64,000 bases of DNA, from contig OZ218950.1 of the NCBI GenBank assembly GCA_965112735.1, forward strand, positions 7,254,001 through 7,318,000, given 5' to 3'. Of the stretch, positions 45,659-62,309 are shown piece by piece. The notes beneath the pieces are model-generated. The model saw only the letters and a program-made list of their open reading frames with translations. It searched no databases and was not told where the DNA came from. How positions within the stretch are numbered: position 1 is the stretch's first letter; every line of letters starts with the position of its first letter. The translations under genes were made by a program, and so were the position numbers. Source of the stretch: Phaeosaccion multiseriatum (taxonomy: Eukaryota; Protista; Ochrophyta, other classes).

Positions 45659-48600
45659 TCACGGCAGCACGGCCCTCATGCGCACCAAGAGGGTCTCCTC
45701 GTTCTTATCGTTCTCGTCATTGACAAACAGATACGCCTCCCTGTGCTGCCCTGGCTGCGCAGGCGCGTGCAACCACAGCCGAAAGTAGCCGGTGCCCTTC
45801 CCCTCAATGTCCACCGTTTCGTATCGGGGCTGCATGAGCTCGGGGTGGCTGGACAGCAGCTTGAAGCTCCTTCGAGCCCCCCAGGGGTTGGTGTAGGCGA
45901 TGCGCTTGTGCGTCTGCTGGCCGAGAGGGAGGTCGATGTCGTACGCCTTGGTCACAGTTGGCAGCGTCGTGGTTGCCGTCGCTAGCCAAGCCCCTACAAG
46001 CTCGCGACTGTCGAGGTCGACCATGTGCACCTGAATCTTCTGTGCGTACACGCCACCACCACCACCACCACCACCACCTGCAGCCGTTGGTGGTACAAGC
46101 GCAGCAGCCCCACCGCGGTCATGGCCGTCGCCAGCGTGACTCACAGCCGCCTCTGCGCCCCCCGCTTGCCTCGGTTTGAAGCGCATCTCCACCCTGTTGT
46201 ACGCGCCCGGCACGAGCTGAAACTCCGCATTGGGTTGGAAGGAGACATCCCTGGGGTGGGAGGAGAAGCACCGCACTCGGCGGGTGTAACGGTCACCGCG
46301 GACCACGAGGTCCACAGGGCTCGATTGGCCCACCGGGGAGTGCACGTCCAGACGCAGCCGGCTCTGAAAGGTATGAAGGCGAGGTGGGTAGGAATAGTTT
46401 CAGATTCAGTTGAAGGGGAGGGAGGAGGGCGTGAGAACAAAATAATCACTTTCACACAGGGAACACGCGCAGCTCCTCACCTGCACGACCACAAGCCAAG
46501 TCTCGTAGAGAGACGATTGGTGATGGTCATTGTAGAGCAGTACATAGAAGCTTTGCTGTGCAGGAAACGGCCCTACCCTGCTCTTGATTAGCACTTCCTG
46601 CTCGCCTCCCGGACCACCAACTGCTACCCCTCCGCCGCCAGCCTGTGGCCGCTGCCGCCACTCTACCACGACGTTCCCTTTGCCACTTCCCATGCCCCCA
46701 TCCTCCACACAGTGCACAAACTTGGGTCCCTGCCCCCCCCCAACTCCCCCTGCTGCCCCAAACATGTCCTCATACGTAGGGCCAGTGCGGGCGCGTGCGT
46801 GCTGTTCAGCCCTCGAGCCCGTCAGCCCCGCCCCCCTCCCCCTCCCCCTCCCCTCCAGCAGGCGGATGGCCCGCTTCAGCACCTCTCCCTCTGCCTGGAA
46901 GAAGCGCAGCGTTCGGTCTGTGACGAAGGGCCGGCGGTGTAGCTCCACTTGCACAAGGTTCACAACGTGTCCGTGGGAGGCGGAGCGGATGCTCACACAC
47001 ACACAACGCTCAGGGATGGAACCTTGACCAACTTGTTCACCAACTTGGTCCCCATCTATCTCATCCCGACCTTGGCCCGGAGCAGCTCGGCCTCCGCCTC
47101 GTTTTCGCGGCTCTACCGTGCAAGTGGCCACAGCACCGGCGTTGGTGTTGGCGTTGGTGTTGGTTCGCCTGGGCACGAGAGACAAAAAGCTGAAGGGTAG
47201 GTACACGCACTCGTTGGCCAGGAGGGTGATCTGCACACCTTCCCGTGGATCCACGTCCAGCATGTCTGCCTCCACAGGGCAGTCGCCAATTGAGCCCACG
47301 CAGGGCCGCACGTGGCGCCGGAGATGCATCCACTCCTCGCTCTGCACCACGAGCCGAAGCTCCGGGTCCTCCACGTCGATGCGGAAGCGCTCCTCGTGAT
47401 TAAAGGGGTTGCGGAACGGGTGCTCGAAGAAGAGGGGGGTGGCGAAGGAGAAGAAGAGGCGGTATTCCGTGGTGAGCGAGGCCGACAACACCCGCTTCAC
47501 CAACTCCTTCTTCTGCCCCTCGCGGTACCACTGGATCAGCGCCAAGGACTCCATACCCCCTGCACACGCCCCTCCTCCATGCCCGCGTGCGTCATCATCG
47601 CTATGTGCACCCCCCTGCGCGCCCCTCTGCTGCCTCATGCCGAAGAGTCCCCTGTTCTGATGCCGCATGCGCAACAGCCGTCTGTCCACAGGGCCCTTCG
47701 TCCTCGCCAACTGCGCCAGTTGCCTCTGCAACGTCGCCGGGTCCGACCCCCCGCCTCCTCCTCCCATCCCCTTTGCCCACTGTCCCTCCCCCTTACCCCC
47801 CTCGATAAGGCTGAGCCCAAGCTCCATCATGACTTGAGCAAAGTCGCTCCTCACCACCTCGCCCGAGTGGTTAGCGTCATAGCGATGGAAGAGTTTCTCT
47901 ACATCCACCCCTCCCCTCCTCGCTTGCCTCCCCACAACTCGCTGAAGTTTGCGCTCCATGTCCTTGGTGTCAGGATCTGTGCTGAACACGTACTTGCCCT
48001 CCTCAATCACATCGCTATCACTGCCACTGCCTCTGCCAGAGTCACCGCCCCAGCCTCCTCCTCCTCTCCTCCCCCTCTGCCGCTTGTTCCGCACGAAGCG
48101 TATAAACTCCACCACGCTAACGTCCCCACTCCGATCCCTGTCGAAGCGATCCACCAAGTCGATGATGTCGTCTTTTGTGATCTTGCCGTGTTCGAATACA
48201 CCCAAATCCTCCAACCCACGGAACATTTCCTTCACCGTGATGCGGCCGTCGCCATCTGTGTCGAAGTGCGCGAACACGCTCTCCATAGCCGCCCCCCTGG
48301 CCTCAGCTTGAAGCACCACCTCCCTCACCAGATTGTCCACCTCATCGTCCTCCTCCTCTTCCTCGTACTCCTCCTCCTCCTCCCTCCCCTCCTCCCTCCC
48401 CCACCTCTCTCTCCTCGTCCTCCCCCCCCCGCCCTCCTTGCCCTCCTCCTTCCCCTCCTCCTCCCCCTGCTCACACCACTGCAGAAGCTCGTGAAGCGAC
48501 ACTTGGCCGTCGCCATCTGTGTCCATGTGGTCCACCACTTGCGTCACCTCCTCCGCCCCCACCTGCACGCCGAGGCACCGCAGCGCCTGCTCGAATTCTG

Positions 48601-51482
48601 TAACGCTCAGCTTGCCACTCTCATCGGCGTCGAAGGACTCGAACACCATCCTCGCCTTACCCCTGCCCTTGCCCTTGCTCCCTCCCCCTCCCTCCTCCCT
48701 CAGTTGCATTCTGAAACGCTCCAACACCTCGAGCACCCCCTGAGACCCCGCCCCTCGTCGCCCCCCTCGGGACGGTGTCCTGGCCTTGTCGTAAGCAGCC
48801 TGGGCCCTCTTCCTCTGCCTGGCCTTGAGTGTGGCCTCGGGGGTGCGCACAAAGGTCAAAATGTCCGCCCAGCTCACCCCTTCACTCCCTTCACCCCCCC
48901 CCCCGAAGAGCCTGACGAAGTCGGTTGCATCCCTCAGAGTGACTCCTTGAAAGGTTCCGATGTCCCCGATGGCCTTGAGCAGCTCTGGAGCCGTTACAAG
49001 GCCGTCGCCATTTGTGTCGAGTGTTTCAAACGCCTCCTCCAGGGATGTGCCCATCTGTTCGACCTTGAGCAGCGTCCTGAGGCAGAGAGAGGGAGGGACG
49101 GAGGGATGGCAGTGGACGGGGAGGAGGTCAGGTGAATGGAGTCATATGGGGCCATAATTTGGTGGGCGACAAGAGAAAGGAGGACAAAGACAGAGTTTGT
49201 CCCGTCCTGCGCAGACAGAGCAGAGCTGAGCACACCAGAGCAGTTGGTGATACAGAGCAGAGTATATGGCATCCCTCCTCCCTGCCCATCTACCTCCTGA
49301 GCTTGCTGCCCACGTCCACTTTGTAGTCCCTCCCCATGAAACGCATGAACTCGCTCAGGCTCACGCTGCCGTCGCCGGACAGGTCGAAGTGCTGTTGTTT
49401 TGTTGACATGATGAAAATATAGGAGCGAGTTGGTGCAGGTTTCGATACAGTGCCATCCATCCGTCCCATCCATCTATTGCCATCCGTCCCCTCCATCTAT
49501 TGCCATCCGCCCCATCCATCTATTGCCATCCGTCCCCTCCATCTATTGCCATCCGCCCCATCCATCTAGTGCCATCCGTCCCATCCATCTAGTGCCATCC
49601 GCCCCATCCATCTATTGCCATCCGTCCCCTCCATCTATTGCCATCCGCCCCATCCATCTAGTGCCATCCGTCCCATCCATCTAGTGCCATCCGCCCCATC
49701 CATCTAGTGCCATCCGTCCCATCCATCTAGTGCCATCCGTCCCATCCATCTATTGCCATCCGTCCCCTCCATCTATTGCCATCCGCCCCATCCATCTATT
49801 GCCATCCGTCCCCTCCATCTATTGCCATCCGTCCCATCCATCTAGTGCCATCCGCCCCATCCATCTAGTGCCATCCGTCCCATCCGATCCAATACCTCAC
49901 CTTGAGCACCGCCTGCACTTCCTCCCCATCAAAAGCCTCAAACACTTTGAGTTTGTGCAGCCCCTGTCTGAGCTCCTCCACATCCATGTAGCCGTCGCCA
50001 TCTTTGTCGAAGTGCTTGAAGCACTCCTCCAGGGGGGTGCCAAGCTCCTCAGCCTTGAGCAGCACGAGGCGAAGTTTGCGTTCCAGTGGACTGTCTGTAG
50101 CAGTGTAAGGCCTGGGGGGAGGGGAGAGGAGGAGGAAAGTGAGACCATCCCCTCTCTTCCCCTTCCACTGCCATCCCCTCTCTTCCCCTTCCACTGCCAT
50201 CCCCTCTCTTCCCCTTCCACTGCCATCCCTTCTCTTCATCTTCCACTGCCATCCCCTCTCTTCCCCATCTACTGCCATCCCCTCTCTTATTGCCGCACCT
50301 GCCCATGAAGCAGAGGAACTCCCTTAGAGACACGAATCCGTCGCCATCTGTATCGAAGCGGCGAAGCACCAACTGCACCTGCTGGGCAGAGATGTCCTCC
50401 TCCTTGAGCACTCCCAAGGACGTGAGGCACTTGGGAGAGAGGGTGGAGAGAGCCACGCGTGTTGGGAATACGAGGCAGTTGTGAGTCGACAGCTGTGAGG
50501 AGCAGAGAGCCCTCCCTCCATTACATTGCCTCCTCTCTCCTCTCCTCCTCCGCAGGACCCACCCCAGACCCACCACCCACACCCATGCCCACCCCACCAT
50601 ACACCCCCCCCTCCTTCCCCTCCTTCCCCCTCACCTCCTGTAGCTCTGCGGCTGTGAGCTTCCCACTCTTATCCTTATCGAACACCCCAAAGGAAGCCTC
50701 CAGAGAAGCTCCCCCCTGTTCTTCGGCCCTCAGCAACACCTTTTTGAGTCGGGCTTCTGCCACCGCCGTCGGAGAGTACTCTACTCCCATGAGCTCCATG
50801 AAGGAGCGGAGACCCACGCTGCCGGTTCCGAGGGGATCGAAGCGGGCCATAAGCTTACGCACCTAGTTACGTAAGGAAAGTGAGAAGAAGAAGGGGTGAG
50901 GTGAGGTGAGGTGAGATGGGGAAGACAATCCCTCCATTGACTTACTACCCACCCATTGACTTACTACCCACCCATTTAGTTACGACCCACCCATTAACTT
51001 ACTACCCACCCATTGACTTACTACCCACCCATTGACTTACTACCCACCCATTGACTTCCCCCCCCCCCCTACGCACCTCTGAGGTGGGAAGCGCGTCGAA
51101 GACCCCAAGGTCCTTGAGTGCCGTGTCGAGCTCCTCCAGGCTGACGGAGCCGCTGCCGTCCTTGTCGAAGTGAGAGAATACCTCCGCTACAGACGTGCCA
51201 AGGCCCTCTGCCTTATGCAGGATGGCCTGAGGGGGAGGGGAGGGGGGAGGCCACACACAGGCGTATGGGTAAAGGTGGGCATATGGGCATATGGGCATAT
51301 GGGCAGGCAGCCAGGCAGCCAGGCAGCCAGGCAGACGATGGGGCGATTCCAGAGGGGATCAGAGGGGGGAAAAGTCAACGTCGGTGCCCTCCCTCCCTCC
51401 CTCCCTCCCCCCCCCCCTCTCTCCCTTCTCGCAAGCACACTCTCTTTCCCTCTCTCCCTTTCCATCTCTCTCCTTCAATCCC

Positions 51483-51522
<40 letters not shown>

Positions 51523-54500
51523 GCACCTTCAATTTCCGCTCGCTGGCCAGCTCCCCTGAATACCTCCTCCCCACGAAGGCCATCAACTCCTTCAGCCCGA
51601 CTGACCCCGAGCCGTCGGTGTCAAGAGCCCTCAGCAGCCTGTCCACCTCTTGTTTGGGCATCGCTTGCAGCACCCCAAGCTCACTCAGAGCCCTCTCTAA
51701 CGCCTTCAGGCTAAGCTCTCCGCTGCCGTCCTCATCCATTGCCCCGAAGGAATCTTCAACGTCGAGCCCTTTGGCTTCTGCACGGAGGAGGGCGGCGCGG
51801 AGACGAGCCTGGAGCACCGAGCTGCCGTTCCACTCGCGCCCGAGAAACTGGGGAGGGGGGAGGGGGGAGGGAGGAGGAGGAGGAGGAGGAGGAGGAGGAG
51901 GAGGAGGAGGAGGAGGAGGAGGAGGAGGAGGAGGAGGAGGAGGAGGAGGAGGGGGGGGAGGAGGGAAGAGGCGCGAAATGTCCGTGATGAGTAGGAGAAG
52001 AAGAAAAACCGGACCTACAATCGAGCTTCGCTGCTCGTCCCAGACTACAGCCCCGAGGGGGACTACAGCCCCGAGGGGGAACACCCCCTCCCCAAGCCTT
52101 CCCAATGATGTGATGCACGCACGCACCTGCATGAACTCTTTCAGGTCGACTTGTCCATCCCCGTCCTTGTCCATGCGTTGGAGCAGCGCCTGGTGGCAGG
52201 ACAAGTCAGTCAGTCAGTCAGTCAGTCAGTCAGCGGCGTCAAGACGCACAACGGTACGTGAGTGTGCACAGACCTCCCTCTCTCCCTCCCCCCACCTCCC
52301 CCACACCCCTCCCTCCTTCCCCCTCTCCATCTCACTCTCTCTTACCTCCAGATCCTGCTTCACCCCCTTCCCCTCCAGGAGCCCCCCCCCCCACCTCCTG
52401 AGCTGGTCCCCCAGCTCCCCCTTGCCAACGCCCCCACTCCCATCCTTATCCAACACCCCGAACACCTCCTCCAGGCTCGATCCTTTGGCCTCGGCTCTCA
52501 GCAGCACCTTCCTCACTCTTGCCTCCAGCGCTAGGCCAGGGCGGTAGGGGAAGCCTGCCCAGCGCAGAAACTCTTGGAGGCTCACACATCCACTGCCATC
52601 TGCATCGAATTTCTTCAGCACGAGCAACAGGTCCTTGCGAGGGGGAAGCACTGCCGTATCAGTATCACCAACCCCCCTACTTCCTTTACCATTGCCTTTC
52701 CCTCCTCCTCTCCCGCCCGTCCCACCAACGGCTGTAGCACCACCCCCCCCTCCCTTGACGAGGCTCCCCACGGCTTGAATAAACTCATCCGCGTCGAGCT
52801 CCCCCGACCCGTCCGTATCAAAGGCAGCAAACGCCTCAGCCACGGAAACCCCCTTCGCCTCGGCCCTTGCGAGCACTCTCCTCAGCTGGAGCTCCACCCG
52901 CCCCGCCCTAGAGGCCGTTAGATCACCAACTGCTCCCCTTCCTTGTTGGCGGGCCTGTATGAAGAGAACAAACTCTCTGCAGCTGACCTTGCCGTCCCCG
53001 TCCGAGTCCATTCGGTTCAGAAGCACTCGCACGTGCTCATCACGCATCACCTTTTGGACAGGGGGGTAACGGGGGTATAACACGGGTATGACACGGGGTA
53101 TGACAGGGGGTATGACAGGGGGTATGACACATTGGAGTTGAGCATCCATCGCTTTGCCATCAGTTCCCCTCCATAAATCAGAGTCCTCGCCCCTCCCTCC
53201 CTATGCCAGTTGGTGACGCGATGCGACACATCGTCGCCAAGCCTCACTCACCTCATGCACGCCGAAGCTCCTGAGCATCTGTTCCAGCTCCTGCAGCGTC
53301 AGCCGTCCGTTGCCATCCCCATCAAACTGCCTGAACACAGCCTCCAGACTCATCGCACAGCAGCCGTCCCCTCCCTTCCGCTGAGCCTTGGCTACCACCT
53401 CTACCAACCGCTTCTCCAGCAGCCTTCCGTTGGGCACATCGAGTAAGTGCAGGAGAGGCCCCTTGTACTTGACCCTGCCCCTCCCGCTGCCCCTGAACCT
53501 CCGCACGAGAAGCATGAGCTCGTCGTAAGTCATGCTGTCGCCATCGCTGAGACTCGAACCCGCACCCCTCCTCCCCCTAACCCCCGAGTGCCTGCGTCCG
53601 TCGTCGCCCCCCGCCGCCCCCGCCACGTCCATCCGGCCCGTGAGTGCAAGCTCCGGCGCAGAGTCGGTGAGGGGCCTGGCCCTGACCTTGTGCCTGGGTC
53701 TGTGCCTGCCATGCGCTGCAGTCTCCACCAGCCCCTCCATCCCCCCTCCCTGCTGCCGTACCACCAACTGCTGTTGTTGCTGGTTGATGTGGGCGTGGCT
53801 CGTGCCGTGGCGCCAGTCGATAGCGTGGCCGCTCCTCGGCGGTCGGTGCACATTGCTTGGCGGTCGCTTCCCCCTCCCGCTGCCCAGACTGCCCTCGTTG
53901 CTCGCCAGTACCTCAATGAGTCCCACCACCACTCCTGAGGAGAGAGAGCCGTGATGGATCGATGTCACGCCGTCGGACCCGCCTGCAGGAAAGCGTTGAG
54001 GAGGGAGGGTGGGGTATGGGGAGAGGGGCACGGGGGGGGGTAGGGAGGGAGGGAGGGAGGGGTGTTAGAAAGAGAGGAAGCAAGCATTACGACAGCCTTG
54101 CTACAGCCCTGCGACAGCCCTGCGACAGCCCTGCGACAGCCTAACGACACGCAGTAGGAGACTCCTCTGCGGCTTGTGCGGCTTGTGCGACGGCTCCTTC
54201 TGCGGCTCAAAGCTTCAACATCGTCGCGTAAGATACGAACGTAAGGGCTTGTTTCACAACCTCTAAGTACGCACACACCCACCCACACACGCACGCACAC
54301 ACACACACGCTTACCTCTTCCCCCGTCAGACACCACCTCAAGTTCCAGCGCGGTCTTAACGAGGGCCTTCCCCTGCCGCAGGAGGGCGGAAAGTGGGAGG
54401 GCACAGGTGCCCAAGTGCAACAGGGCGTCGGCGTCCCAAACGTCAATGAAGAGGGCCTTGTCGCTGAGGTAGTCTGCGAAGTGAGCGGCCTCGAAGGGCT

Positions 54501-57284
54501 GCAGTTGGGATGTATCGATGCTGTGGCGGATGGCCAGGGAGGGCTCGTCCTTGCCGTAGCGGGTCTGGGGAGGAAGGGAGGGAGGGAGGGAGGGAGGGAG
54601 GGAGGGAGGGAGGGAGGGAGGGAAGGAGGGAAGGAAGGAGGGAAGGGAGGTAGGGAGGGAGGGAGGGAGGGAGGGAGGTGATGGTTTAGCAGAGGAAAGG
54701 AGGGAGGGAGGGCTGTCCCTTGTCGTTGGTATTGGTAGTGAGTGCCCTTGCTGTCCGTTCGCGGATGGAGGGAGCAGAACAAAGGAACACAGCGCCTTCC
54801 CTTCCAGGCCTTCCCCCTCCCTCCCGAGTCCGCCCTTTCATGTCACGCCCGCGCCACCCCCCTCCTCCTGCCCCTCCCTCCCCTCCTTGTTCCCTCTTAC
54901 CTCCCTCACTAGCACCCTGAGGGCCCCCGCATCGTCCTGCCCTCTGTATGCCCTGAGCCTCATCCTCTCAGTGCGAGTGGGCAAACACGTGTAGAACTGG
55001 TATGTCAGGTAGATGCTGGCGGGCAGGGGCATGCTCGCTTTGGGGCAACGGTAGCCCGCGAACTGAGAAGCAAAAGTTTCAGTTTGGGCAGAGAGAGAGG
55101 GGGCCGTGACGGGTGTAGAGAGAGAGAGCGAGAGGCGAGAGAAAGGGAGAGTGAGACAGGGAGTGAGAGGGGAGAGCAATCAGAGGGAGAAGGGGAGGGG
55201 GGGGGGGCAGAGAAAGAGAAGGGAGACAGGAATAGCGAGGGATAAGAGGGAGGGAGAGAGGAGGGAAGCGTGGAGAGGGAGAGAGGAGGGAAGTGTGGAG
55301 AGGGAGAGAGGAGGGAAGCGTGGAGAGGGAGAGAGGAGGGAAGTGTGGAGAGGGGAGAGAGGAGGGAAGTGTGGAGAGGGAGAGACGAATTCGAATTCGG
55401 CCGCGTGAGTCCGTCTAAGTGGAGCTGGAGGAGGGGAGGAGGAGGGGAGGAGTCGCGGCACCGCATGTACCCCGGGGGGGTTGCACGAGCTACAGAGCCC
55501 CCCGGGGGATAACAAGCATCAGGCATTAGATCCCCCCGAGCTACGTAAGTACATACGTAACCCACCTGAAGCACGACATCGTTGAGTTTAAGCCTGTCAT
55601 TGGCCTCTATGTCGAGGTCGAAGGCCTCTAAATCGCCCGTCAGCAGCCCCGCCGTGTCCGTGCCTCTATCCCGTGAGTACAGCGTGTCGTGCATCACGTC
55701 CTGGAAACCGAAGCGGCTCATGCGCGTGCGGTCAGCGCGGCTCAGGCCCTCCGCCCCGAGGGGGGACCGGCCGCCCACCCCCACCGCCGTGGGCCCATAG
55801 TCCTCCAACATGGCCTGCCCGCCCCCGGGGTGCTGCTGCCCATATGCCTGCTGCTGCTGCTGGAGGAAGAAGTCGGTTTGCATGCCTCGATCCTCGACGT
55901 GGAGGGGCGCCTGTGGTAATAGCGATTGGGGGGGGGGGGGGGCACACAAGACACCCAACAACAGCAAGGTCAGGTCGAGCCGGGTTGGACAGTTAAGGAG
56001 CAGTGGAGAAGCGGAACAGTTCAATTGTGTGAACTCCACACACCCACCCGCGCTTCTTCCCTTCCTTTGTGCATGTACCAACAGCACCAAGAGCCCCTCC
56101 CATCCGACACAGATGGCGTACTCTCAACCCCATACCACCGCCTGCCCTACCTGCAGCGTCTGCCCGAGCAAGCTATCCCTTGCGGGCGGCACCTTCAGCC
56201 CCCTGCCCCCCCTCCACTGGTCCCAATCCTCCGGCCGCCCCCCTGGAGTCCCCCTGAGGCTGCTGCCGTCGGAGTCTCCTGCCACGAGGCTCATCTCCAT
56301 TTCGAGCCGGCGTGCCTCCGCCTCGGCCTTCAGGCGGGCCAGCTCCTTCTCTCTGTGGGGACGGAAGGAAGGGAAGGGAGTGGATGGATAGATGGATGGA
56401 TGGATAGAAGGAAGCAAGTGGATGGATGGATGGATGGATGGGTGGATGGAAGCAAGTGGATGGATGGATGGATAGAAGGAAGGAAGTGGATGGATGGATG
56501 GATAGATGGATGGAAGCACATGGATGGATGGATGGATAGAAGGAAAGAAGGAAGGCAGTGGATGGATGGATGGATGGATGGATGGATGGATGGATGGATA
56601 GAAGTAAGCAAGTGGATGGATAGATGGATAGGTGGATGGAAGGAAGGCAGTGGATGGATGGATGGATGGATGGATGGATAGAAGGAAGGAAGTGGATGCA
56701 TCGATGGATGGATGGATGGAAGCAAGTGGATGCATGGACGGATGGATGGATGGAAGCAAGTGGATGGATGGAAGGAAGGAAGTGGATGGATGGATGGATA
56801 GAAGGAAGGCAGTGGGTGGATGGATGGATGGATAGATGGATGGATTGATGACAACAAGGACGCGAAGGGGAGAAAGGGAGGGCATAACAAGGACGAGAAG
56901 GGGCGGGCATATTGGCGGGCATATTGGCGGGCATATTGGGGGGCATATTGGGGGGCATATTGGGGGGCATATTGGGGGGTTGATGAGACAAATGAAAGCA
57001 AGTCAAAGCCAAGTCAAGCCAAGCCAAGCCAAGCCACGCCAAGCAGGCCGAAAGGGGGGAAGGGAAGTGCACAAAAGGACAAGCCACCGCAAGCAGGCCG
57101 AAAGGGGAAAGAGAGGCACAAAAGGACAAGCCACAAAAGAGGCCTGTTATGGAGAGAGGGCACAGCTTCACAGCTAACATAGACAGACAAACAGCCAGTC
57201 AGCCAGCCAGCAAGCCAGCCAGCCAGCAAGCCAGCCAGCAAGCCAGCCAGCCAGCAAGCCAGCCAGCCAGTCAGCCAGCCAGCA

Positions 57285-57327
<43 letters not shown>

Positions 57328-57368
57328 AAGCCACCCAGCAAGCCAGCAAGCCAGCCAGCCAGCCAGCT

Positions 57369-57400
<32 letters not shown>

Positions 57401-57401
57401 C

Positions 57402-57434
<33 letters not shown>

Positions 57435-60400
57435 ACGGGCTCGCGGACTGGCGCATCTTCTCTACAGAGTTTGCCCACACCCGCCTGCCTTTTCCTTCTT
57501 TTCCTTCTTACTTCATTCATCCCACCCACCTTCCCCTCCCTCCTCACCTGCGCTTCCGCTCCCTCTCCTTCTCGCGCTTGAGCAGCTTGGCTTTCTTGGC
57601 AGCTGCCGCCGCCCTCTTCCTCCTCCTGTCACCCTCTCCGTCGCTGTCCGCGCTCGATACAGATGGAACCTCGCTCTCCTCTTCCTCTTCGTCCTCCTCC
57701 TCCTCGCTCCTTGTGCCCCCCGACATACTCTCATCCTCATCCTCATCCTCCTCCTCCCCCTCCTCCTCCTCCTCCTCCTCCCCCTTTCCCCAGCGCTTGT
57801 CCCACTGAGATGGCTCAATGTCACTCTCGTCCTCGTCTTGCTGCGGGGTCTCGTCCCTTACCCTCCCTCCCTCTTCGTCAAAGGCGCGGACATCGAAGAA
57901 CACGCTGCTGCTGCTGGCGTTACGAGTCTCCTCTGTGTGAAGTTTGAGTTTCGGTTTTGGGGTTGAGTGTTTAGTTTTCCGAATTGGGGGGGGAGGAATT
58001 GCTGACCCCTATTCAATACACACACACACACACACTCACACACACTCACACACACACAAGAGAGAGCGAGAGAAGTGTACCCACCCGGATTGGTGTAGAC
58101 GAGGTCCCTTGTGACCATCCTCACGGCTCTGTCGGAGGAAAGGGAGAGCTCCACGTCCATCGCGTCAGAGCCTCGGGCCGTGTTGCGCAGACGCAGGCGC
58201 CGCCCGTCGAAGGGCACGAACACCTGCAGCGCAGCAGTTACATGCAAGCAGTTACATGCAGCAGTTACATGCAGCAGTTACATGCAGCAGTTACATGTGC
58301 ATGTTTAGAATTAGAGAAGCCCATAATCAATCATTGGCTTACTTCAGCCCACCCCCGCACACAACCACCTACTCACGCACACAAGCAAGCACGCACACAT
58401 GCAGGCGCACACACGCACACACGCACACACGCACGCACGCACCTGCATGCCCAGAACGACGGGTAGAGCGGCCTGCTGCAGCTCCGCTCGGGCGGCGGAG
58501 AGGGGGTCCATCGACGATGCCCCCCCCCTACCCCGCATACCCCCTCCTCCTCTGCGCCCCCCCCCCCCTCCTCCTTCAGAGTTGTCGCCATTTGAAGACA
58601 GCCGAGCCCTGGTGCGAATGGTGTACTCCACCACGACAACGAGCGTCGCCAACTCATGCTTGACGAAACCGCCAACCTCCAAAGCGTCCAACCCACTTGC
58701 CAGCATGAGTATGTCTGGCGCCTCTGTCTGTTCGAGGGAGGCATCCACCCAGCCGCCCAAGGAACCGCCTCCGCCTGAGCCGTCACCGCCGCCGCCACCA
58801 CCCATATGACTGCTGCCACCCTCCCCGCTGCTACCCCCCGGGAGCACGAGGGAGTGCCCGTTGTGGAAGGACACTTTGACCCTGCGGTCCAGTACCTTGC
58901 TCTTGACGGCTGAGCTGTCACTTGCCTGAAGAGGATCGGCAGAGGCGTGTGTGTGGGACATTGGAAGGACATGGATACAGGCGTATGGGTAGATGGGAGG
59001 GAGCGCATACACTGTCCATATACCTGCAGATGTGCTGTACTCACCTGTGTGCTGACGAGGGATTGCGTGGTCCTCAGCGCTGCCACACCCCTCTTGAGCG
59101 TGCTCTGACGCACCTCCTGGGCGGGCACCTCCTGTTACAGTTACACAGTTACAGTTTAAAAGGCACGTACGTCAGGGGGGTGGGGGGTAGCAAGACAGAG
59201 AGAGTCAGAGCGAATAGGAAGAAGAGGGGATAGGCCGTACAAGATGGAATGGCCCATACACTTCCAACATTGGCCGATAGTCCTCTAACATGGGACGGGC
59301 CCTGCGCACCTGCAGAAGGTGCTTGAGCATGGCCCTTTCGAAGGCCTCCCGCCCGGGGATGTGCACGCGCAAGTTGGTGAGTCGGAACGTCAGGGTGGGC
59401 GCCAGTTGAGGACGCAGGGGCCGGGGCACAAGCCTGCTGCCAAGGGAAAGGGTTCGTTCGGTGCATCGATTAAGGTCTGTGTCAGCCATCCACTGCCGTC
59501 CCTACCATCCACTACCATCCCTCCCTCCCATACCTGCTGTGCCTCTTGCGTCCCCCCTGGTCCTCCAGCTTGAAGCCGAGCACGTTGCCCACGAAGACCG
59601 CCCCGTCCTCTGCCTCCCCCCCGTCCACTGCCATCCCCCTTCGCATTGTGGTCCCCAGCCCCGAGCCGCCTCCCCACGGCAGCTGCACCCTGCGCTCCCT
59701 GACACCAGGCACCGGGTCCAGGCCGCTGACAATCTCGTCCTCTCGGATGAGGTGCTTGGCGTCCAACAGTTTGTCAAACGCCTTGGGGAGTTGGTGATAC
59801 AGAGGAGAGGAAGGAGGGAGACAAGAGAGGATGGCAGAAAAATTAGCGATTGTATCAAGATCAAGAGATTGGACTCATCTCGCTGGACTTAGTGTATCGC
59901 CATTCTCTTCCCCTCTTACTCCTTCTCACCTGCAGCGTGAACCACAGGCTGCACCCCGGAATAGCGCTCTCCCCCATACTCCCCCAGTCCTCCTCCTGGA
60001 AGAAGAGGAGATTCCTCGGGGTTCCGTGGTACACATCCCTGCTCTGTATCGCTCGGAGCTCGTTGGGGCCAAAGCATTGGATGACAGTCCAGCCACAGCC
60101 GAACTGTTTGCCCATCTCGAGGCCGTGTTCGTCGTCCATCTCTGTAGGGATACAGGCAGAAGCATATTGGGAAGGAGGGGATAGATTGAGGCGTATGGGT
60201 AGGCAACAGAGGGGGTTTGAGTTGTCGGCGGCGTGAGGGGGGGCATGAGAAAGCACACTTCCCTTTCGTATTACCCACTCCTTCTCCCCACCCCACCCCC
60301 CATATGCCTCTACCCACCTGTGGCCACGAGCTCCACCACAGCGATGCAGTTGGGATCCTCAAAGCTTGTGTACCAATACGCCACGTCATCATGCAGCGTC

Positions 60401-60693
60401 GTCACGTCCTCCTCATCCGACTCGTCGCCATCCATGAAGTCCGAGTCCGAAGAGGAGCCCGAGCCGTCCCCCCACCTGTTTCTGTTTCTGCCGCTCTCGG
60501 CTCTTCGCTTGGCGCTTCGCTTAGCTCTTCGCTTGGCTGCCTTGCTGGCCTTGGTCTTGCTGGCTCTGCTGCTCTTGCTCTTGCCGCGGCGCGAGCGTGT
60601 GGCGTTCGAGTTGTACATGACCCTACCCATGTCCTCGTCGTCCTCGCCTTGGGAGTTAGGGAGAGAGGGAGAGGGAGGGGGGGGTGGGGAGGG

Positions 60694-60752
<59 letters not shown>

Positions 60753-62309
60753 CGAGAGAGAGAGAACAAGTGAGGGAGGGCGAGGGAGAGGAGGTGTCGA
60801 AGGTCAGCGAAGCATAGCACAGCAAGAGAGAGGCCTTGACCTAGGCAATTCCTGGCTCGTGCTGTCCAATGACGGCCCGCCCGACCCCCCCGCCCCAAGT
60901 CACAACAAGTCACAAGAAGGCTCCCTGCTTGCTCCTCCCTGCTTGCTCCATCTCACAACAAGTCACAAGAAGGCTCCTCCCTGCTTGCTCCATCTCATGG
61001 CCCTCGCCCCTACGCCCCACGGCCTAACGCAGCAATGGAACGTCACTGAACGAATGAGGCCTCTCATCCTGCCCTGCTATCTCTGCTATATCTGCTGTCC
61101 TCTCCGTTTACCTCCGATGCTGCACCCCACGAAAGTGTTGCCGTAGAAGCGGCGACTGCCGCAATGGAAGAAGCTGAGGCTCAGCGAGTAGCGTAGCGAG
61201 TGGCCCGCCTTGTTGACTCTTGCCAGGAAGGGCTTGGGCAGGCTCCATCCCTCCACCTTGGACAGGTGAAGGAAGAAGGGGGTGCAGGCGCCCCCCTTGG
61301 CTCGTCGGGGCTGCTCCGCTTTGGGTAGATCCCCCAAGGATAGGAAGGTCTTTCGGCGGCAGAAGCTCACCCATCCCCTCGCGCGTGCCTCCTCCTTGAC
61401 CTTGGCCCTCGTCTTGAGGATCACTCCGCTCTCTCCGTCCTCCTCCCCGCCAGTAAGTCCGTTGGTGAGTGTCATTCCCAGCCCGACCCTGCTTCCGCCC
61501 CCAGGCGCCCCTCCTCCCCCGGGGGCTCTCCTGCCCCGCGAGCCAATCTTCGGGCTCAATGCGCGCGCATGGCTCCTCGCAAGGGTGCCGCTAGCGCTGA
61601 AGCGGCCGCCGCGTCTTCTCCTGCCGCCGCCGCCGCTGCCGCTGTCACTGCCATACTCGTCTCTGGCGTCTTGCTGCAGCTGCTGGCCCCGGCTGCCCGA
61701 TCTGCGTCTCCTGCTGCCACCGCGCCTTCCCTCCCTCCCCGGTCTACCCTTGCGCCGCCCCCTCCCCCCTCTGTCTTGGTCATCGTCGTCATCATCGAAG
61801 CTGTCCTCCTCGGAGTCGCTCACGCCGTCCTGCCCTTCGTCGCCTTCTTTCTCCTCCCTGCGCCGCCCCCGCCGGGATGCCCGGCGCTTCGGCGAGGGAG
61901 ACTTGCTGCCCCCCCTTCCTTTCTGCGCCTGCCCCTTCTTCTCTTTCCCATTGTCGCCCCCCTTGGCACTCGTCGATGGGCTGCGGCTGCTGCGAGAAAG
62001 GAAGGAGGTGGCAGTCCTCCCACCCAGGATGCCGCCTCGTCCGTCCTTCTTCCCCGCAGCTTTGTCCTTGGTGGTGGCCTGCTTCTTCTTCTTCTTCACG
62101 TCCTCTCCTCTCTCTCCGTCTTGCCTCCTCCTGCTGACATCGCTGCTACCGCCTGGCTTCTTGCCCCTCCCCTTCACCTTGCTCCCCCCTTGCTCCTGTT
62201 GCTCATGCTGGTCCTGCCCCTCGTCCTCATCCCAGGGCATCTGCACCTCACCCCCCCCTTCATCTCCCTTTCTGCTGCTGCTGCTGCCGCCGCCACCAGG
62301 GGCCACCAT
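45659..62309 (-). CDS. NPHP4: Nephrocystin-4 (NPHP4) homologue with an inserted array of ~21 EF-hands, >20 exons
   Basis: N-terminal: [49 protein letters not shown]. Middle: [39 protein letters not shown]-terminal: [83 protein letters not shown]. All resemble NPHP4 as recalled. Confidence 0.88.
49451..49885. repeat. 23-bp intronic minisatellite TGCCATCCGYCCCWTCCATCTAK
   Basis: About 18 tandem copies. Confidence 0.92.
50145..50288. repeat. ~27-bp intronic minisatellite CCATCCCCTCTCTTCCCCTTCCACTG
   Basis: About 5 copies. Confidence 0.9.
50933..51056. repeat. ~20-bp intronic minisatellite CCCATTGACTTACTACCCAC
   Basis: About 6 copies; related copies at ~38453-38485 (inverted) and ~40790-40830. 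Confidence 0.9.
56381..56845. repeat. (GGAT)n-based intronic satellite
   Basis: Seen directly. Confidence 0.95.
57193..57433. repeat. (GCCA)n intronic microsatellite
   Basis: Seen directly. Confidence 0.95.

Follow-up and report, generated by a model that had tools for sequence, protein, structure and literature searches.

NPHP4 (nephrocystin-4), a conserved protein of the ciliary gate, is implicated in ciliopathies. Ca2+ controls how stramenopile zoospores swim and encyst, and also the loss of flagella on settling. Animal NPHP4 consists of two C2-type regions (NPHP4N-C2 and NPHP4C-C2) and three immunoglobulin (Ig) domains (Zhang & Aravind 2012; PMC3495828). The same paper noted EF-hand domains in the NPHP4 of some eukaryotes, suggesting a response to Ca2+ (PMC3495828), and our literature search found no study of the EF-hand NPHP4 proteins of stramenopiles beyond that one sentence. 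Depletion of NPHP4 in Paramecium impairs Ca2+-induced deciliation (PMC7093003). RPGRIP1L (NPHP8), with which NPHP4 interacts directly in the NPHP1-4-8 module, is a core NPHP transition-zone protein that also gained EF-hands in one protist lineage, but in Paramecium these are few, C-terminal, and dispensable for localization and for Ca2+-induced deciliation (PMC7093003). In Chlamydomonas, flagellar excision is reported to involve Ca2+-dependent centrin fibers at the transition zone (PMC2115546, PMC2119956). Here we describe the NPHP4 locus of the ochrophyte alga Phaeosaccion multiseriatum, which lies in a 64-kb stretch of DNA (assembly GCA_965112735.1, contig OZ218950.1, positions 7,254,001-7,318,000 of the forward strand). 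We call this whole stretch the window and use its coordinates throughout. Judged by its sequence, the gene is an NPHP4 orthologue with an internal array of EF-hands.

We found that the conserved blocks on both sides of the array match NPHP4. We searched the window (tblastn) with three holozoan NPHP4 proteins, those of Chromosphaera (P0126, 1461 amino acids [aa]), Salpingoeca (P0145, 1464 aa) and sturgeon (P0140, 1428 aa). Residues 750-829 (756-829 in Chromosphaera) matched a central block at 54552-54331 (E 1e-11 to 1e-13), and residues 981-1455 matched a C-terminal Ig-like region at 47545-45680 (E 4e-44), in the same order as in the holozoan proteins. An initial annotation of the window had placed NPHP4 blocks at ~54300-54500 and ~47480, and both the positions and the assignment to NPHP4 were correct. 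The two blocks are separated by ~150 aa in holozoan NPHP4. In contrast, they are separated by ~1,400 aa in Phaeosaccion, and this gap holds the EF-hand array.

The C-terminal block was further identified through its relatives. A phmmer search with 46481-47545 yielded 365 homologues. The closest of these carry the precomputed Pfam families PF26190, PF26189, PF26015 and PF26187, the first three of which are named Ig_NPHP4_1st, Ig_NPHP4_2nd and Ig_NPH4_3rd in the ESM Atlas (score of 0.96 to such a cluster), and two homologues carry the source names 'nephrocystin-4' or 'nephrocystin-4-like'. Our local Pfam scan assigned no NPHP4 family to any exon, with a copy of Pfam that predates the Ig_NPHP4 models (Pfam 38). 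Based on these homologues and on the holozoan matches at both flanks, the C-terminal Ig-like domains and the central block upstream of them are those of NPHP4, the central block by sequence match. By its position, the central block would be the region named NPHP4C-C2 by Zhang & Aravind. For the N-terminal region (including NPHP4N-C2), direct matches to holozoan N-termini were weak (E 0.04-0.6), whereas 11 pieces matched a profile of stramenopile homologues.

The locus reads as one minus-strand gene of ~15.6 kb (45659-61286) with at least 21 exons, based on collinear homologue matches upstream and a stop-free spliced model downstream. The window is eukaryotic DNA of ~60% G+C, with short GT-AG introns. 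The profile of the N-terminus, for which we used 13 full-length stramenopile homologues, gave 11 collinear minus-strand matches from 61286 to 54319 (independent E-values 1e-4 to 8e-20 over nine N-terminal pieces), and tblastn with full-length homologues placed the N-terminal pieces in the identical order. These coding pieces, placed by homology and with approximate boundaries, are at 61286-61122, 60402-60322, 60115-59930, 59778-59677, 59420-59310, 58916-58596, 58244-58089, 55781-55566 and 55065-54895. The true start of the gene may be further upstream, inside an open reading frame (ORF) at 61086-62309. For the remainder, we located 12 exons (A-L) with the homologous proteins of Phaeothamnion and Tribonema as guides and then chose consensus splice sites. 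The resulting model (54567-45659, minus strand) encodes 2063 aa without internal stops. All 11 of its introns are GT-AG, the translation across each junction reproduces orthologue sequence, and the stop codon at 45659 corresponds to the C-terminus of the Phaeothamnion protein (P0001).

Between the two NPHP4 blocks, the gene encodes 21 EF-hand loops (53323-47843, minus strand), the number given in the initial annotation. We scanned all six frames of the window with the pattern D.[DNS].[DNSG].{6}[ED] and found 18 minus-strand loops between 53323 and 47878, every one within coding-like ORF pieces. Elsewhere in the window, in any frame, there were only scattered hits that fell in low-complexity runs (acidic or rich in serine) or crossed stop codons. 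The 18 minus-strand loops are canonical at six positions: D (position 1), D, N or S (positions 3 and 5), G (position 6), a hydrophobic residue (position 8), and E or D (position 12). The other three loops are degenerate and are at 51736-51701 (Ala at position 12), 50838-50803 and 48901-48866. There is also a vestigial 'loop 0' (53497-53462) just upstream from EF1. Pfam families EF-hand_1, _5, _6, _7 and _8 matched every exon-bearing ORF in the array interval (best E 7.5e-35).

The loops are organized in 10.5 tandem units of ~90 aa, each full unit consisting of a linker helix, an odd-numbered EF-hand and an even-numbered EF-hand, in agreement with the ~10 repeats of this composition described initially. 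The array spans residues ~270-1395 of the model, or ~1,100 aa. A hidden Markov model (HMM) of the 90-aa unit, built from five units in the window, had 12 matches in the spliced model, corresponding to 10 full units and a terminal half unit; one unit is split into two matches by a glycine-rich insert.

At both ends, the array lies in an open frame together with conserved flanking sequence. Exon A (54315-54567; 5' edge approximate, donor GTAAGC at 54314) encodes the central conserved block (...LLRQGK...ELEVV), supported by the holozoan tblastn matches and a profile match (E 1.2e-34). Exon B (53252-53982) is one open frame that contains a linker region conserved among stramenopile homologues, followed by vestigial loop 0 and EF1 (53323-53288). 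It matches residues 788-984 of P0011 and 689-857 of P0007 (tblastn), and Pfam EF-hand_6 (E 6e-8). At the other end, exon K (46481-49076) encodes EF15-EF21 (49018-47843, with two low-complexity spacers) and then, from ~47545, the NPHP4 Ig-like block. The frame is uninterrupted: in ORF 46406-49054, seven loops (six canonical, one degenerate) are followed without a stop by the NPHP4-homologous block that starts TTEYRLFF at 47473. The initial annotation had reported the last six loops in one exon with the C-terminal block. Exon K matches Pfam EF-hand_6 (E 7.5e-35) and Phaeothamnion P0001 (phmmer E 2e-90). Exon L (45659-46363), which follows a 117-nt GT-AG intron, encodes the last Ig and major sperm protein-like part of NPHP4 and the stop codon. 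Its junction with exon K (VVVQ|SRLRLD) matches P0001, and it matches sturgeon NPHP4 residues 1234-1425 (tblastn E 1e-24).

The remaining loops are distributed over eight exons, all on the minus strand. Exon C (52346-53050) encodes EF2-EF5 (loops at 53008, 52819, 52606 and 52450), with the glycine-rich insert within unit 2 (Pfam EF-hand_1, E 3.5e-23). Exon D (52127-52189) encodes EF6 (loop 52171-52136; Pfam and loop table), and its junction reproduces the Phaeothamnion orthologue. Exon E (51527-51847) encodes one complete unit: a linker helix, EF7 (the loop with Ala at position 12) and EF8 (Pfam EF-hand_7, E 1.3e-14). Four exons were assigned from Pfam matches, splice sites and the loop table: exon F (51077-51226) with EF9 (loop 51166-51131); exon G (50635-50862) with the degenerate EF10 and EF11, which is 56% identical to P0001 residues 92-166; exon H (50299-50429) with EF12 (loop 50354-50319); and exon I (49901-50111) with a linker helix and EF13 (loop 50008-49973). 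Exon J (49294-49391), assigned from the pattern scan, splice sites and the loop table, encodes EF14 (loop 49385-49350) and matches P0001 residues 273-311.

Low-complexity sequence is present within the coding part of the array. In exon K, a trinucleotide repeat (48336-48472, minus strand) encodes an acidic run rich in E and D, ~45 codons long, between EF18 and EF19, and there are glycine-rich runs within unit 2 and after EF20. Disordered spacers are evidently tolerated inside the array.

We compared the predicted fold of the units to known structures. An AlphaFold2 model of exon E, made with an alignment of 46 units, has five helices (predicted local distance difference test [pLDDT] score 79): the first is 19 residues long, and the others form two helix-loop-helix motifs whose loops have the short strands characteristic of an EF-hand pair. 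The best Foldseek match was the EF1-EF2 pair of ACF7 (template modeling [TM] score 0.63-0.75, root mean square deviation 2.0 Å), and calmodulin lobes, polcalcin and calcyphosine also matched; all are EF-hand pairs. In a model of three units of the Phaeothamnion orthologue (pLDDT 86, predicted TM score 0.64), the five-helix unit recurs, with short non-helical connectors between units. Over two consecutive pairs, this model was 28-32% identical to its calmodulin and centrin matches. Foldseek with the three-unit model returned only such two-lobe matches of the calmodulin and centrin type, and no solved structure with a comparable chain of EF-hand pairs. By Pfam, the loop table, the models and Foldseek, the array consists of EF-hand domains, that is, helix-loop-helix motifs with 12-residue loops, in pairs. 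The checks suggested in the initial annotation (splicing and translation, Pfam, and structure prediction) thus gave a stop-free 12-exon model, EF-hand families and an EF-hand-pair fold.

In these models, the array looks like a chain of calmodulin-like lobes, and its pairs may work like them. Calmodulin and centrin, the latter also as the Ca2+-contractile fibers of the Chlamydomonas transition zone, share with the array the EF-hand-pair fold and canonical loops. Like them, the array would be relevant to Ca2+-dependent events at the base of the flagellum. They differ in being free-standing proteins that wrap around target helices and have four EF-hands in ~150-170 aa, whereas in Phaeosaccion 10.5 pairs are covalently chained, each preceded by its own conserved helix. 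Membership in the calmodulin/centrin family was considered and rejected, as the pairs are modules of a scaffold of >2,000 aa.

We found that similar arrays are widespread in stramenopiles. An EF-hand HMM built from the window cleanly split the long homologues into those with arrays and those with none. Arrays were present in the oomycetes Phytophthora infestans ('nephrocystin-4-like protein' XP_002903573, P0085, 2028 aa), Lagenidium, Saprolegnia (S. parasitica XP_012200236, P0046, 3470 aa) and Aphanomyces (A. invadans XP_008861649, P0155, 3607 aa). They were also present in the ochrophytes Pelagophyceae sp. CCMP2097, Chrysophaeum (C. taylorii KAJ8607018, P0041), Phaeomonas parva, Tribonema gayanum (transcripts P0004 and P0175), Phaeothamnion (the partial protein P0001 from P. 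confervicola), Ectocarpus and Discosporangium. Every named array-bearing protein is from a stramenopile. Most of the stramenopile homologues are annotated merely as 'hypothetical' or 'EF-hand domain-containing'. In contrast, the HMM had no match in the named non-stramenopile homologues sampled, from the streptophyte Mesostigma, Rhodelphis, the chytrid Entophlyctis, the ichthyosporean Chromosphaera, the choanoflagellate Salpingoeca, and an animal (sturgeon). The statement in the initial annotation that animal NPHP4 has no such array is consistent with this result and with the ~150-aa spacing of the blocks. As a working statement, the array is specific to stramenopiles, for a sample made up of named homologues; many metagenomic homologues carry no taxon label, and alveolate and rhizarian NPHP4 are outside the sample.

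The stramenopile homologues have the same arrangement as the Phaeosaccion protein: N-terminal and central blocks, then an array of ~90-aa modules, then the Ig_NPHP4 domains. In each array-bearing lineage in which units were counted, the array is between the same two NPHP4 blocks, with an identical insertion site. The homologues differ only in the number of units, in the loops that have decayed, and in lineage-specific low-complexity spacers. There are 5 units in P. infestans, 14 in Saprolegnia, 17 in Aphanomyces and 8-10 in pelagophytes, compared to ~11 in Phaeosaccion. The comparison of orthologues proposed initially therefore separated stramenopiles from the other eukaryotes sampled, but the architecture is not unique to Phaeosaccion.

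The array appears to be ancient. Within the window, the units share only 25-50% identity with one another, whereas specific Phaeosaccion units are 50-58% identical to units of equal rank in Phaeothamnion, Tribonema and Discosporangium (25-45% for units of different rank). That is, the units of the nearest relatives are positionally orthologous to the Phaeosaccion units. From these identities we conclude that the array is old, that its units have been evolving separately, and that a recent or homogenized expansion of a repeat is excluded. No signal of one-to-one orthology is left between these units and those of oomycetes or pelagophytes, where all pairs are 20-50% identical. Since the named oomycetes and ochrophytes share the module between the same blocks, an array was most likely already present in their common ancestor. 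The arrays of oomycetes and pelagophytes may have grown independently from a smaller ancestral array. The pattern of loop decay differs among orthologues: EF16 (48901-48866) is degenerate in Phaeosaccion, Phaeothamnion and Tribonema alike; EF10 (50838-50803) is degenerate in Phaeosaccion and canonical in Phaeothamnion; and EF15 is canonical in Phaeosaccion and degenerate in Phaeothamnion.

What might the array do? We favor, and consider probable, the reading that this NPHP4 orthologue with its ancient array is at the transition zone and that binding of Ca2+ changes the scaffold. As in other organisms, NPHP4 would be located at the transition zone of the flagellum; a transition-zone scaffold role common to Phaeosaccion and non-stramenopile NPHP4 is presumed. 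The array would bind many Ca2+ ions, and binding would alter the shape, stiffness or partner binding of the scaffold. In this way, the array would link the transition zone to the Ca2+ signals that control zoospore and gamete behavior (flagellar shedding at settlement, or gate permeability). As a hypothesis, the Ca2+-responsive spring or gate put forward in the initial annotation is plausible. Several observations weigh against this functional reading. Three loops are degenerate and which ones are degenerate varies between species, so some sites are dispensable. Between lineages, unit number differs three-fold (5 to 17), as would suit a spacer of flexible length no less than a finely tuned sensor. 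The EF-hands of Paramecium RPGRIP1L are dispensable for Ca2+-induced deciliation (PMC7093003), so the EF-hands of a transition-zone scaffold need not drive shedding. In addition, the public runs that contain this DNA are four in number, all from one sample, and none is recorded as RNA. It is possible, although we consider it a good deal less likely, that the array is a structural spacer: a string of constitutively folded EF-hand-pair beads, Ca2+-saturated or Ca2+-independent and without a role in signaling, that lengthens NPHP4 to span a transition-zone geometry specific to stramenopiles. The range in unit number, the decay of different loops in different species, the low-complexity spacers tolerated within the array, and the Paramecium result all speak for a spacer. 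Yet 18 of the 21 loops retain all six diagnostic positions despite an overall unit identity of 25-50%, and the maintenance of ligand positions in divergent units argues for selection on the Ca2+ ligands and not on the fold alone.

The other alternatives are less probable than a spacer. In a more elaborate version of a Ca2+ response, the array makes NPHP4 a Ca2+-triggered mechanical or switching element that executes or licenses shedding and closure of the gate when zoospores or gametes settle, with a lineage-specific length (5 to 17 units) tuned to transition-zone structures peculiar to heterokonts. By analogy, the array would then be a covalent counterpart of the centrin fibers of green algae. 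We find this doubtful. A link to the heterokont transitional helix was set aside and is kept only as part of this doubtful version. NPHP4 is a protein of the region between doublets and membrane, and we know of no transitional helix in brown algae, which do carry the array. These points disfavor the link, as the helix lies within the doublets (PMC9010356). Stramenopile NPHP4, with its large array, might also have been re-purposed to buffer Ca2+ or to serve as a scaffold under Ca2+ control away from the transition zone, for example in the flagellar root, the basal apparatus or the cytoplasm. This seems improbable, because the NPHP4-specific blocks, the N-terminal one putatively, are kept and are collinear with those of holozoan NPHP4, arguing that ancestral interactions were retained. 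Least probable, and close to refuted, is an artefact, either a separate multi-EF-hand gene nested between two halves of NPHP4 or a mis-assembly. The lack of any run recorded as RNA would allow for this, as would the minisatellites in the introns, which break short-read contigs. But at one end of the array, seven loops, one of them degenerate, are in a single open exon with the Ig_NPHP4 block, and at the other, EF1 is in the same exon as a stramenopile-conserved region downstream of the central block. The 11 GT-AG introns of the model preserve the frame, and their junctions reproduce orthologue sequence. The same order recurs in transcript ORFs of Tribonema and Phaeomonas, as it does in the gene models of several further stramenopile genera. 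The 1296-aa Tribonema transcript ORF (P0175) aligned to model residues 637-2059 in one high-scoring segment pair (42% identity, 1438 columns) that covers the later EF-hand units together with the C-terminal Ig-like blocks. The 1557-aa Phaeomonas parva protein, which from its accession type we take to be of transcriptome origin, had six unit matches and the C-terminal block. Contigs from the four runs cover the region collinearly, introns included, with small indels as the only differences; they contained no intron-skipping joints. The claim in the initial annotation that the fusion is not an artefact of the gene model is borne out by the shared open frame and by the Tribonema ORF.

The novelty implied in the initial annotation did not hold up. 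The array is widespread from oomycetes to brown algae, the combination of domains was noted in 2012 (PMC3495828), and the EF-hand NPHP4 architecture is already public for many stramenopiles, partly as nephrocystin-4-like, so that nothing at this locus is categorically new. This analysis adds an exon-by-exon model of the gene, a definition of the ~90-aa module and its precise site of insertion, the span of unit numbers, and evidence that the array is ancient. With potential Ca2+ sites ranging from ~10 (Phytophthora) to >30, stramenopile NPHP4 is a natural experiment on how calcium might act directly at the transition zone. The module, its insertion site and its distribution provide a concrete target for laboratories working on cilia, oomycetes and brown algae.

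Two further features were noted in the noncoding and upstream parts of the locus. ORF 61086-62309 (minus strand, 407 aa), which holds the first conserved NPHP4 piece, opens with ~300 aa of low complexity rich in G, R, K, E and S. This stretch may be a real N-terminal extension, or translation may start at a downstream Met near 61.3 kb. The introns are dense with mini- and microsatellites (49457-49885, 50145-50288, 50934-51057, 51870-51964, 56372-56850 and 57192-57434), including 23 bp x 18.7, 26 bp x 5.5, 19 bp x 6.5, (GGA)x32, (TGGA)x111 and (CAGCCAGC)x30. Contig joints with a short side (~21 nt) were dismissed as repeat-induced artefacts of the intronic minisatellites. In addition to breaking short-read contigs, the repeats yield long spurious ORFs on both strands, such as the PSIHPSIH-type ORFs at 56124-57180.

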